From Epithemia pelagica (Eukaryota > Protista > Bacillariophyta), in contig OX337236.1 in NCBI GenBank assembly GCA_946965045.2, positions 310,001 to 374,000 of the forward strand: 64,000 nt of DNA, read 5' to 3'. A program made the translations under genes and the position numbers. Positions 25,858 to 30,356 of the stretch are shown here, in pieces. The first letter of the stretch is position 1, and every line of letters starts with the position of its first letter. The notes below the pieces were generated by a model that worked only from the letters and a program-made list of their open reading frames with translations, was not told where the DNA came from and ran no database searches.

Positions 25858-28158
25858 ATGTCGACGTTGAATGGAAGCACCGTCTCAGCTGAGCCGGAGA
25901 AAGAGAAATCTTCCCTCAACAAGGACAAAATGGATCGAGTCCGTCGCGTCTTTGGAGATAGCGTCATGGACGATGATGATAGTTTCTTTATGTACACACC
26001 GTCACCCGCGAAACAGGAAGATAGCCAGCCTGGTGACATTTTTGGGAAAACCGACATTACTCCGATCAACCGTGCTTCAGTGGATAGCACAAAGCCATTG
26101 CTAACAAAGTCCGTCCTTAACTTTGACAGTGACAAGGAAAACGAAAGGGATGTTAATGCTGTGCAAGCATCTGGAACGCCCAAGATCCATACACCAGTCT
26201 TGGGATATAGCCAACGCGCAGGCTTGAATCGACAGTCACGAGCATCTGTTTCATCACAAATGATGAAGAAAACCCAAGAGGCTGTTGACAAGGCAGCGTT
26301 AAGTGTTCAGCGATCAGCCGGGGCCGCAGAGACTGGAAAGGACTCCACATCAGCCGTGGAGAAAACCGCAACGAAACAACGGATCGAATGGCAGAAAGAC
26401 TTGACAGAAGCAAAAGACTTTCAGGAAGAGATGAAAAGAACACGATTCGAGGGATTACGTCTACAGAGGCAGCTTGCATCTGAGGCAAGCAAAGCAAAAG
26501 CAGGTTTTCATCAAGTTCTTAGGGACTGCAAACTGCAGTGTATTGAAGAAGAGTCACAGTTCAAGTCATCTGTTCATCGTGACCATACGGAAGCTCTGCG
26601 ACAAGAACGAGAGCGTCGACGACGAGAGTCTGAAGCCACAAGAGCGCAAGTACGAGCCAATGCTCGCATCGGTGTCGAACGGCTTCAAAAGGAACAACAG
26701 CTGATGGATGAAAGGATTTCGGCCGAACGCAAGGCAGCGAGCGACGCAACACGTAAGACAAGACGCGAAGAAGCCGAGCAACGTCGAAAGAGTTTTCAAT
26801 TCCGGTCGGGAGACGCACAGCGTATTCGAGATATCTGTGCCAAAATGCGGGCTGAAAAACTAGACGAGCAACATAAGAGCTACGACCTGGAGAGAAAGGC
26901 GGCGAAAGATGTCGACGAATACCGCAAGCAGGTAGGAAAGGAGCGACGTGAGTGTATGATACAAAGAGGAGTGGACTCGCGCAAAGCGAAAGAAGTCGAG
27001 AAGCAACGGGTCATGGAATCACAAGACCAGGACACTAAGCTCTGGGAACTTGAACGAGCTGCTGCACGAGACGTCGCTAACGCGAAGGTAGAAGCAGCCA
27101 GAAAACAGCAGAAGGAACTCGCTGAAATGAGAGCCGTAGCCATGGCAAACCGCAAGCAACTCGAAAAGAAGCACACCCAAGAAAGGGAACAGATTCACCA
27201 GAGCTACGAAATGGAACGAGCAGGTACAAAGGACGTTGATGACTACCGAAAGAAGCTGGCGCAACAAAAGCGTGAGAGTATGGTGTTTCGTGGCCAAGAA
27301 TTTGTTCGTCAACGCGAGATCACTTCTAAATCTCAAGCTCATGACAAGGAGCAAGAGCATGAGTATTTCGAGATGAAGAGGGACGCAGAGAAAGACGTAC
27401 AAAAGTACTTAGCCGATGAGCGAGAGGAACGAAGAAAGAGTATGGCTGGTAGAAATGAGGAGCGTTCCCACCATGCAAAAGTAATGAAAGAGCTTGAACA
27501 AGTTGCTCGTGAAAAGGAAGCGGAAAGTTATGTTCTGAAATGGGCAGGAGAAAAAGATGTTCAAGAGTATGAACGAAAAATAAAACAAGAGCGTAAAGAA
27601 TCACTTGAACAACGAGGGAAGGAAAGCGTCCGGATACGAAAGCAAGAAGTTGAGGAGAGACAACAAGAACTCCAATCCGCCCATGAAGACGAAGTTTTAA
27701 GATCAAATGACGCGAAAGACGTTGAGGAGTATCGACGGAAATGTGTTCAACGAGATAGAGCCTCGTTGCAATACAGAGGGAAAGAAGCGACAAAACAAAG
27801 ACTGCAGAAACGTGAAGGACAAATGGCGGAAAGAAAGATTGAAGAATCAAACTGTGAACTAGAAACCATGGCTCGAAAAGACGTTGAAGATTACGTTGCA
27901 GTATGTAAGCAACGACGACGATACTCTCTGGCATTTCGAGCCAAAGAGAAACGTCGGCACATCCAATGGAAGAAAGATCAAGAAAAACAGCAACGTCTGA
28001 ACCAGACCGCAGAAATTCGCGCCCGGTTGATGGATCAACAGTACTTGGAACTTTCTCGACAGCAAGAGCAAGCTGCAAGGACGCTGGAGGCAATTCAACA
28101 CCAACAGCGCCTTTTCGAGAAGAAGGCACGGAATCCTTTTCAGGATTTGTTCAAATAA
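25858..28158 (+). CDS. Charged alpha-helical protein with exact 54-aa tandem repeats, 766 aa
   Basis: KDV..Y......RRxS...RG motifs recur every 54 residues. From 26743 to 27877 is 1134 nt, exactly 7 x 162. Confidence 0.85.
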   Translation: MSTLNGSTVSAEPEKEKSSLNKDKMDRVRRVFGDSVMDDDDSFFMYTPSPAKQEDSQPGDIFGKTDITPINRASVDSTKPLLTKSVLNFDSDKENERDVNAVQASGTPKIHTPVLGYSQRAGLNRQSRASVSSQMMKKTQEAVDKAALSVQRSAGAAETGKDSTSAVEKTATKQRIEWQKDLTEAKDFQEEMKRTRFEGLRLQRQLASEASKAKAGFHQVLRDCKLQCIEEESQFKSSVHRDHTEALRQERERRRRESEATRAQVRANARIGVERLQKEQQLMDERISAERKAASDATRKTRREEAEQRRKSFQFRSGDAQRIRDICAKMRAEKLDEQHKSYDLERKAAKDVDEYRKQVGKERRECMIQRGVDSRKAKEVEKQRVMESQDQDTKLWELERAAARDVANAKVEAARKQQKELAEMRAVAMANRKQLEKKHTQEREQIHQSYEMERAGTKDVDDYRKKLAQQKRESMVFRGQEFVRQREITSKSQAHDKEQEHEYFEMKRDAEKDVQKYLADEREERRKSMAGRNEERSHHAKVMKELEQVAREKEAESYVLKWAGEKDVQEYERKIKQERKESLEQRGKESVRIRKQEVEERQQELQSAHEDEVLRSNDAKDVEEYRRKCVQRDRASLQYRGKEATKQRLQKREGQMAERKIEESNCELETMARKDVEDYVAVCKQRRRYSLAFRAKEKRRHIQWKKDQEKQQRLNQTAEIRARLMDQQYLELSRQQEQAARTLEAIQHQQRLFEKKARNPFQDLFK

Positions 28159-28338: not shown

Positions 28339-30356
28339 TCACTGTCCTTGAAATGAGCGGAACGCGTCCCTATCGTCGTCATCATCCGATCGAGCTTTAA
28401 CTCCACTTCTTCCAAATAGCACATCTGTCATTTCACTACCTCTATCATTCATCTCTGATGATTGCTCCTCTCCGACCAAATCATCCATGAGCATTTGTCT
28501 TGCTTTCTGTAAATGGGCTTTCCGAGCAGCATCCAATTCAGGTGGAGTTGACTGTGCAGCAAAGAACGGCTTTTCCTCTGCCTTGTCAGAAGCAACTGCT
28601 TCCACCGTGGCCACACTAGCGCTTGTTTCAATCGACGAGGCAATTTGATCGAGTTCCTGAAGGAGATATTCCGTCGCCATGGACGCCACACTTGTTTCCG
28701 GTCCAGTCAGTCGAGGTGGTCCACGGCTTGCTTCACTTCCAGTCAGTCTCTTTTCCAAGGCCTGCTTGAGAACCTTGATGAGATCACCCTTTTCGACTTG
28801 TTTGCGGTCAACGACCCGATTCGCAACGGGGATGGCATCATTGGCCAAGTTCATATCCTTTTCCGGTACAGCCCCTGTTTCTTGAAAGTCTTGAGCAATC
28901 TTCAAGGCATCCATTTCCTTGCGATTGACCTTTTGATCCTCCAAGGCATCCCAGTCACGAAGCCGGAGCATGGTTTCCAACTGGTCGACGGATATTTGAT
29001 TCAATGTCTTCTCGTTTTGTTTGTACACAAGTCCAGTGGGTATGCCCCTCTGTGCCGTTCGCACTTGTTTGGTTCGAAGAATATTGATCATGGGCCAAGG
29101 AGAACGTCGAGCATAGTTGGCAGCTTGACCTTGCGTCGCACGGTCACCGCCATCTCGGAAGGACCAGTGTGGATGGAAAAACACCAATTGGAGCAGCTCT
29201 TCCACTTTGAGGGCGGTCAAGGGTTGTGTGAGTGAATTGCAAAAGGTTTCAAACAACTCGACATTGTCCATAAAAAACTCTGGAGCAATCAGTAAGGTCG
29301 TGCTCAGGTCCTTTTCGGGTTGTTGTTCCACGCGGACGACTTCTTCCCAATACTTGACATACATATCTTCTACCGTACTCGCCCGAGTCACTTCGTAATG
29401 CACGGGTCCCAAGGGCAATCCAGCCGTCTCGGCACTGGTGGTAAAGGGACACACACCCATGTCCGACATGAACCGTTGGACCCACCGTTTGGACACCTCA
29501 ATAATCTCTTCGTCGTCGTTGGGGACTTTGTTGACAATTTCGGGGTAGGGATCTTTGGGCAAATCGCAGTCGTCAATCCCCGAGTAGAGCGCTTCAAAGT
29601 CGGTTCCATCGTCCCAATAGGGATCGTACCCAAAGTTAAACTCGTCGTCCTCATTGGCGTCTTCGCCACTTCCATCCAGGTTGACCGTCTTTGGATCCTT
29701 GAAGGACTTGGCGGTAAACCCCACCACGCGGTTGGTCGCCTTGTCCACGTAGGGCGTGAGCGCCGTTGTCATACCAAAGTGATCACACACATCTTTGCAG
29801 TAGTCGAGATGGGCAATGACATTGTTCAAATAACGAGGTGGTTGTTGATTGAGTTGTTCTTCCATTTCGGGATAAATGACAGTATATGTTTCCTACGAAA
29901 GAAGGAAACCAAAAGCAGAAGCAGAAACAAGCAGAAGCAGAAACAATAGGGTAAGAAAGTCAAGGGTCTCCTTGGTTGACCTCCATGGACAACAGAGTGT
30001 CCATTTCTCGACACACAACGTAACAAACAAAGGTCACCCACCCCTCTTGTCATTGTACCCGATTGAGCAATTTGGTGCCAAAGACCAGCCAACAGTTGAG
30101 GTGTGGTGCTCGCTGGATCTCGTGGATGCCACTCATCGTCCTCACTTTCCACTTCATCCTTTTTGGCGGACGACAATGCAAGGCCAACCGGTGCAAGCAA
30201 GTGTTTTTGTTGGTTCGTAGAAGTAGCGGATGGAAGGATACCGGCAGGGGACCTTTGTCCATTCGGTTTGTGAATCGTAAAAGACGTGGTGTAGCATGGT
30301 GATACGACCAGCCAAACGACGACCATCAAGGGTATCCGCCGAATGAAATACAACAT
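28339..30356 (-). CDS. DUF1415-like domain protein, likely plastid-targeted and intron-containing (5' exon structure approximate)
   Basis: WVQRFMSDMGVCPF, STTLLIAPEF, QLVFFHP, NYARRSPWPMINILR resemble DUF1415. The 5' exon MLYFIRRIPLMVVVWLVVSPCYTTSF resembles a bipartite presequence. Confidence 0.7.

Follow-up and report, generated by a model that had tools for sequence, protein, structure and literature searches.

Nebulin is built of tandem helical modules of about 35 residues that are matched to the actin subunit spacing of 5.5 nm, and its fixed total length acts as a ruler. As for tubulin, stathmin forms a long helix with an internal duplication that runs along two tubulin dimers, and phosphorylation of its serines by basophilic kinases weakens the binding; it has only two repeats and binds curved, unpolymerised tubulin. 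The stathmin-tubulin picture reportedly comes from Gigant et al. 2000 (Cell 102:809) and Jourdain et al. 1997. Furthermore, the microtubule-binding element of MAP7 is a single 53-residue alpha-helix that lies parallel to the protofilament over about one tubulin dimer (PMC8985661). Here, a stretch of 64,000 nucleotides of the diatom Epithemia pelagica (assembly GCA_946965045.2, contig OX337236.1, positions 310,001 to 374,000 of the forward strand), referred to below as the window, was analysed with regard to a gene at its positions 25,858 to 28,158, whose protein carries eight tandem units of exactly 54 residues. These units belong to a real, undescribed repeat family that is found in centric and pennate diatoms and in which the 54-residue period is kept almost without exception. 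For the role of this period, the best single hypothesis is that one unit follows one alpha/beta-tubulin dimer along the protofilament, a tentative proposal that draws only on geometry and analogy, with MAP7 as the nearest working analogue.

The repeat array was evident in the protein. In the translation of 25858-28155, position 26743 is in frame and corresponds to residue 296, from which eight consecutive 54-residue blocks follow without a gap. The self-identity of the protein was highest at lags of 54, 108 and 162 residues (0.235, 0.230 and 0.217, respectively), against a maximum of 0.153 at any lag over 500 shuffles, so that the eight in-register units free of insertions and deletions proposed in a sequence-only reading of the window were recovered. 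In the DNA, the identity at a lag of 162 nt was 0.41, compared to 0.27-0.31 off register, while Tandem Repeats Finder reported no array at the repeat region; the repeat being visible only in the protein or at this lag, the array appears to be ancient and diverged, and not a recent duplication. A hidden Markov model (HMM) of the unit identified seven strong units (independent E-values, i-E, of 1e-9 to 1e-20) and a weak one between 26728 and 27999, and no further units elsewhere in the window. Moreover, three motifs had been ascribed to each unit, which held for the majority of them. KDV..Y was present in 6 of the 8 blocks, one further block having RDV without the Tyr; an RRxS-like site was likewise present in 6/8, the other two blocks showing Cys (RREC, unit 1) or Glu (QQKE) at the Ser position; and five of the eight carried RG or RN, another block RA and unit 0 RSG. 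The third unit (unit 2, 27031-27192) is degenerate, lacking the Tyr, RRxS and RG.

A word search provided 13 relatives, the closest named one belonging to Epithemia clementina (57% identity), in line with the pennate diatom that had been raised as a possible host. A profile was then compared with 1.84 billion cluster representatives, a wider search with a repeat HMM having been recommended. It retrieved 358 proteins with E-values up to 1e-3, 114 of which reached 1e-30 or lower; the named members were centric and pennate diatoms, with few exceptions. The pennate members were Epithemia, Fistulifera solaris, Seminavis robusta (Sro696_g188970) and Amphora coffeiformis, and the centric members were Cyclotella cryptica, C. 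atomus, C. cf. meneghiniana, Cyclostephanos tholiformis, Conticribra weissflogii and Thalassiosira antarctica. A non-diatom entry came from Durinskia baltica, one of the Kryptoperidiniaceae dinoflagellates, which carry a diatom endosymbiont, and a partial entry of uncertain origin was labelled 'Symbiodinium microadriaticum'. This taxonomic spread rests on the named members, as a minority of the family carries a taxon label. A second, distant subfamily was also found (including P0125, P0126, P0130, P0132, P0142, P0149 and P0150, with E-values from 1e-21 to 1e-30 against the profile), whose units have the Trp-rich signature W.D(V/M)..YK......RRxSLA.RLD.WR. Its proteins are shorter (~600-640 aa) and have no YSPSP head, yet they keep the 54-residue period; P0142 is encoded by locus L001. 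This subfamily includes one Durinskia baltica (dinotom) member and one partial member labelled Symbiodinium microadriaticum, which may represent contamination or transfer. Literature searches on a 54-residue repeat, diatom microtubule-associated proteins (MAPs), diatom KEN boxes and the locus tags of the orthologues yielded nothing relevant to the family, and the supplements of three Seminavis papers had no entry for Sro696_g188970.

The length of the unit was nearly invariable. Among 155 representatives sharing at most about 50% mutual identity, 568 out of 586 successive unit spacings were exactly 54 residues and six more were 108, so the exact period claimed for the window gene applies to the family as well. 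The inferred unit starts were exactly 54 residues apart in all 13 of the first homologues, the self-identity of the second subfamily was strongest at lags of 54, 108 and 162, and 67 units from both subfamilies together could be aligned in exactly 54 columns with zero gaps. In contrast to the period, the number of units varied from 5 to 12 among the relatives, changing only by whole blocks of 54 or 108 residues, as exemplified by the exact 108-residue gap in P0008-P0013 and by the identical amplified units in Cyclotella; selection thus holds the period and not the total length. One-to-one orthology between species applies to the last four units, and turnover to the first ones. Lineage-specific bursts, in which 54-residue units are near-identical, were observed toward the N-terminal end of the array in P0286 (Cyclotella cryptica), P0037, P0053 and P0042. 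The odd spacings coincided with short non-helical inserts such as STFCHSPAGTGH (P0042 at about aa 358-385, P0080 at about aa 167-202 and P0134 at about aa 22-35). Most of these inserts look like introns left unspliced in public gene models, and an intron ahead of the second-to-last unit is therefore probable in some relatives.

Such a constancy of length is unusual for a repeat that has diverged to about 24% identity, and it points to a geometric constraint, e.g. the matching of a lattice or the packing of straight helices. With 3.6 residues per turn, 54 residues of alpha-helix amount to 15.0 turns and a rise of 81 Å (8.1 nm), so the face shown would be identical from unit to unit and would recur at a constant axial interval. 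The same face of a helix returns only at multiples of 18 residues, and a single added residue rotates everything downstream by 100 degrees. Intolerance to insertions and deletions would hence be expected if a straight helix had to offer a repeating face to a periodic partner or to its own copies.

The unit has the consensus EHxSYELKWAGEKD(V/A)xxYxxxxxEERRxSLxxR(N/G)xExxRxR, which forms a conserved block of 39 residues and is followed by a spacer of about 15 residues, variable in sequence and constant in length. The columns D14, Y18, R27, S29 and R33 were each conserved in at least 90% of cases. A block followed by a spacer of fixed length is also what a multivalent docking scaffold would present, in which the block of each unit (SYELKWAGEKD..Y......RRxSL..RN.E) would bind one soluble partner (a kinase, a phosphatase, an EF-hand protein or a phospho-reader) and the helical spacer would separate the sites, similarly to the Sfi1-centrin and myosin IQ-light-chain arrays. 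The units keep individual orthologous identities, one of them with its own conserved spacer (HAKVMEEL..LA.EKE), and the C-terminal NPF tail suggests the recruitment of further partners, both of which fit a scaffold. However, a scaffold should tolerate small changes in spacer length, and none was found in about 570 junctions; furthermore, no known docking motif (IQ, Sfi1) appeared in the Pfam scan, and this explanation is considered unlikely.

Regarding the structure of the units, no proline was present in 72 sampled units and only 18 were counted in 34,938 residues (647 units), with 45% of the residues of the rod being charged and 20% hydrophobic. The net charge of the window protein was mildly basic in this region (+19 over aa 284-715). 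The AlphaFold2 model of the window protein, built from an alignment of 81 sequences, showed helices at residues 171-389, 408-552 and 562-752, with a mean predicted local distance difference test (pLDDT) value of 65 and a predicted template modelling (pTM) score of 0.25; the pLDDT was mostly 65-87 in the helices, falling to 54-62 at aa 361-450. For P0007, which is 30% identical to the window protein and has more regular units, helices were predicted at 167-327, 337-493 and 505-741. In both models, the helices (145-237 residues long) cross three to four and a half units, and the few breaks between them are of low confidence, fall at different unit columns in each protein and are not spaced by 54. 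These continuous helices agree with the single-helix type of repeat that had been suspected, and the compact hairpins that were named as the refuting outcome were not seen; hairpins with a period of 54 were accordingly rejected. A compact helical hairpin or solenoid, or else a charged sequence of low complexity without periodic function, is thus very improbable. Small residues do occupy two columns (A/G at 11 and N/G/A at 34) and could in principle form turns, but the helices pass straight through both columns in most units of the two models, Ala is common at both and proline is almost absent, and the loops of a solenoid usually tolerate insertions and deletions, none of which occur here. Plain low complexity is excluded by the strong column-specific conservation across hundreds of proteins.

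A canonical heptad coiled coil was rejected too, the a/d occupancy in the best register being 0.494 compared to 0.491 +/- 0.015 in shuffled sequences. No conservation moment was found at the heptad angle of 102.9 degrees (p = 0.69-0.87), the best angles being near 96-100 degrees, and 7 does not divide 54 evenly. With 100 degrees per residue, a single arc of 160 degrees holds 13 of the 18 most conserved columns. Single alpha-helix domains are recognised by a very high charge, dense Glu-Lys/Arg pairs at i to i+4 and few hydrophobic residues; here, next to the 45% charged and 20% hydrophobic residues, the salt-bridge score was 0.119 vs. 0.101 +/- 0.009 after shuffling (about 2 standard deviations). 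Instead of tubulin, the rod could have its own copies as partners, i.e. straight, non-supercoiled helices (54 = 3 x 18, with a periodicity of 3.6) would associate laterally to form a bundle or a filament with an axial repeat of 8.1 nm. Packing would involve the conserved face together with a basic zone (columns 19-42) and an acidic zone (columns 43-54 and 1-6), and multi-site phosphorylation and the anaphase-promoting complex/cyclosome (APC/C) would control both assembly and disassembly during division, e.g. of a spindle-pole, spindle-matrix or nuclear scaffold. The basic and acidic zones do separate within the unit, the hydrophobic residues (about 20%, clustered in columns 5-30) exceed those of a typical isolated single alpha-helix, the AlphaFold2 monomer folds back on itself at the low-confidence breaks, and the integer-turn argument for a strict period serves self-packing equally well. 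However, neither a heptad nor any other strong hydrophobic seam was detected (the a/d occupancy equals that of shuffles), there was no confident tertiary packing (pTM of 0.25-0.27), and 18 or 36 residues would do as well, 54 not being needed. Self-association is therefore regarded as possible, although on balance doubtful.

The most conserved part of the unit includes the RRxS site, for which 647 ungapped units from 154 proteins were compared. R26 was present in 79% of them, R27 in 96% and S29 in 93%, and column 30 was L, F, Y, M or I in 97%; the motif R-R-x-S-(L/F) matches the consensus of protein kinase A (PKA) and Aurora-type kinases. Column 29 had Ser in 604 out of 647 units, and the 43 exceptions, which include 29 with Asp or Glu, one with Thr and two with Ala, were scattered over 20 proteins and different units. 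Moreover, the basic pair was kept in 87% of the units with Ser and in only 24% of those with Asp or Glu. Unit 2 of the window protein (Glu420) is one case of such an acidic exchange with the basic pair lost. The joint replacement of Ser by an acidic residue and loss of the arginines for kinase recognition would be expected of a real phosphosite and not merely of a small structural residue, so the assignment of one kinase site to each unit gained backing. RRxS is thus a probable basophilic-kinase (PKA/Aurora-type) site, putatively one per unit. In P0053 and P0077, found among the proteins with unit bursts, Asp has replaced Ser29 and the basic pair is missing.

Short motifs flank the rod on both sides. 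The N-terminal 170 residues were predicted as coil with low model confidence (pLDDT <50 at aa 51-119). In this head, 31 of the 47 representatives with a complete N-terminus had [KR][VIL]FG 14-24 residues ahead of Y(S/T)xSP, with the family form K-rich-A(R/S)(R/K)VFG(D/N)x(V/I)xx(D/E), the Lys-rich patch preceding the motif in most relatives. We take the RRVFG of the window protein to resemble both the RxLFG motif through which Cip/Kip inhibitors dock to cyclins and the RxxLG destruction box (D-box). Neither of them suits all members, and the D-box reading was rejected as not robust, since about one third of the relatives have Ser at the position of the D-box Arg (ASKVFG, ASRVFG). Downstream lies the conserved Y(S/T)PSP site. 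The pattern Y[ST].SP was present in 53 representatives and was accompanied by K/R at +3 in 22, as in a site for cyclin-dependent kinases (CDKs). The tripeptide KEN, the classical APC/C degron, was found within 150 residues downstream of Y(S/T)xSP in 37 of these 53, while 3.8 were expected by shuffling (about tenfold). Being a conserved KEN motif in a disordered region, it makes the family a candidate APC/C substrate. Taken together, the head motifs would predict CDK control and destruction at mitotic exit, and the family is probably regulated by the cell cycle. At the opposite end, NPF appeared in the last 25 residues of 28 out of 45 representatives that reach the last unit, with the family form NPFx(D)LL, often after C(S/T)F. 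NPF is a ligand of EH domains in other systems, and by analogy the tail may connect the protein with membrane traffic or cytokinesis.

The family was also compared with known proteins. No Pfam family matched the window protein at E <= 1 (no Stathmin, MAP7, TPH, IQ or Sfi1 match), and a scan that included ten relatives returned nothing or spurious helix matches of 10-40 residues (VbhA, PH_FT_C and others). Against all PDB chains, which include the solved microtubule inner proteins (MIPs) of axonemal doublets, searches by sequence, unit profile and family profile to E = 10 gave only a chance match to MukB (E = 0.2), and the profiles found no doublet-microtubule, stathmin or RB3 chain at E <= 10. 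With the full model, Foldseek gave a best E-value of 1.6 (vimentin) against the PDB, which is meaningless for long helices, and its top axonemal row had E = 4.4. The ESM Atlas, restricted to named clusters, gave no usable match for the whole protein or the repeat region. UniRef names the orthologues of Cyclotella and Cyclostephanos (P0286, P0288 and P0274) 'Trichohyalin-plectin-homology domain-containing protein' or 'Trichohyalin', a label not reproduced by Pfam at E <= 1 on those orthologues and probably driven by composition.

MAP7 shares with the unit its helical length (53 vs. 54 residues), but it has one helix and no in-register tandem array, it shows no sequence kinship in Pfam or PDB searches, and its domain is much more basic. 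In stathmin and RB3, the ERRKS context is similar to that of the repeat; in contrast, these proteins have two repeats only, bind curved unpolymerised tubulin and gave no Pfam or PDB match here. Nebulin is alike in concept, with its fixed-length tandem helical modules, here an invariant 54 residues (568/586 spacings) with helices continuous in two models. It differs in polymer, unit length and sequence family, and its total length is fixed, compared to 5-12 units here. The trichohyalin-plectin-homology (TPH) proteins and filamentous ciliary MIPs (CFAP53, MNS1) also have long E/K/R-rich helices; however, neither a Pfam TPH match nor a PDB doublet chain was found, so the kinship with ciliary MIPs that had been raised as a lead fell away. 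A flagellar MIP role was rejected as the main idea because there were no MIP matches and because the family is retained in pennate diatoms, which lack flagella. Spindle proteins with KEN boxes (TPX2, NuSAP, PRC1/Ase1) have a conserved KEN in a disordered region beside proline-directed sites, as here, but none of their domains was found by Pfam.

The protein has three predicted parts, namely a disordered head with motifs, a long proline-free and non-heptad helical rod and a short NPF tail. According to the favoured tubulin-dimer hypothesis, the rod, with 8-9 units in the window protein, each of 15 turns and 8.1 nm, would lie along the microtubule protofilament with one unit per dimer, as the MAP7 helix does, and its binding surface would be the conserved face formed by columns 4-36 (L7, A11, D14, V15, Y18, R26, S29, R33 and E36). 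A PKA/Aurora-type kinase would phosphorylate the serine of RRxS-hydrophobic in each unit, by which binding would be tuned or released in a graded, multi-site manner, and the head motifs would confer cyclin/CDK control followed by APC/C-dependent removal at mitotic exit. The diatom mitotic spindle or microtubule centre would be a plausible setting, and this mitotic context gains support from the KEN/CDK head. The sequence-only reading, which had proposed a lattice-binding filament with one kinase site per dimer, is partly supported. Its exact period, its continuous helix and its single probable kinase site in each unit stand, and the proposed microtubule association draws on the arithmetic (54 x 0.15 nm = 8.1 nm) together with the MAP7 precedent.

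Several points weigh against this hypothesis. No homology was found between the family and tubulin-linked proteins in Pfam, PDB, Foldseek or ESM Atlas searches. The known microtubule-binding helices are strongly basic, and the average unit of the family is nearly neutral (+1) with invariant acidic residues (D14 and E36), which speaks mildly against tubulin as the partner. The clustering of the conserved columns on one face was statistically weak (p = 0.02-0.2), and the conserved RRxS could be structural instead of a kinase site. Furthermore, every straight-helix repeat requires a period that is a multiple of 18 residues, so a length of 54 could also suit self-packing or a different periodic partner. 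Both AlphaFold2 models represent monomers, have moderate confidence (mean pLDDT 65-68, pTM 0.25-0.27) and do not tell a single rod from a bundled one.

If the rod does follow the tubulin lattice, the family would represent a new principle in the architecture of MAPs and would be a natural phospho-rheostat with multiple sites. Diatom mitosis is a structural model of decades, for which few non-motor components have been identified as genes. A bolder and rather doubtful extension would be a 'nebulin for microtubules', i.e. the first MAP with a tandem array in its own sequence that keeps register with the tubulin-dimer lattice, with one phospho-switch per dimer, which would be built and destroyed in each cell cycle and could help to organise the central spindle of diatoms, which is unusually ordered. 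Should the rod not track the lattice, the family would still provide a clean natural repeat of straight helices with 18n residues and a diatom-specific candidate APC/C substrate. The features of the gene are collected in the table.

Table. Positions in the window of the gene, its motifs and its repeat units
Feature	Position	Strand	Basis
Single-exon gene	25858..28158	+	Open reading frame, 766 aa plus stop codon; taken as a single exon since homologues of 781-810 aa span 97-100% of it
RRVFG motif (aa 29-33), then hydrophobic and acidic residues	25942..25956	+	Motif comparison among relatives
YTPSPAK (aa 46-52), putative proline-directed CDK-type SPxK site	25993..26013	+	Y46, S49 and P50 invariant in 13 homologues
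KEN tripeptide (aa 93-95), head predicted as coil with low confidence	26134..26142	+	Conservation among representatives
Predicted alpha-helical rod (aa 171-752)	26368..28113	+	AlphaFold2 model; ~87 nm at full extension
Unit 0 (aa 284-337), weak, RRKS (S312)	26707..26868	+	HMM i-E 0.001-0.002; R310 and S312 conserved >=90%
Unit 1 (aa 338-391), RREC (Cys366) at the RRxS position	26869..27030	+	Translation, unit HMM
Unit 2 (aa 392-445), degenerate, Glu420 in place of Ser, basic pair gone	27031..27192	+	Translation, unit HMM
Unit 3 (aa 446-499), KRES (S474)	27193..27354	+	Translation, unit HMM
Unit 4 (aa 500-553), RRKS (S528), spacer HAKVMKELEQVAREKE conserved family-wide	27355..27516	+	Unit HMM; one-to-one orthologous across species
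Unit 5 (aa 554-607), LKWAGEKDV, RKES (S582)	27517..27678	+	Unit HMM
Unit 6 (aa 608-661), DRAS (S636)	27679..27840	+	Translation, unit HMM
Unit 7 (aa 662-715), RRYS (S690)	27841..28002	+	Translation, unit HMM
C-terminal NPFQDLFK tail	28132..28155	+	NPF among the last 25 aa in relatives

Finally, a convergent neighbour gene was observed at 28339-29865 on the reverse strand, encoding 508 aa with a DUF1415 domain (E = 8e-39) and long acidic disordered flanks. A perfect 16-nt tandem repeat (AAGCAGAAGCAGAAAC x 2.1) appeared at 29913-29946, in the intergenic or 5′ region of this DUF1415 gene.

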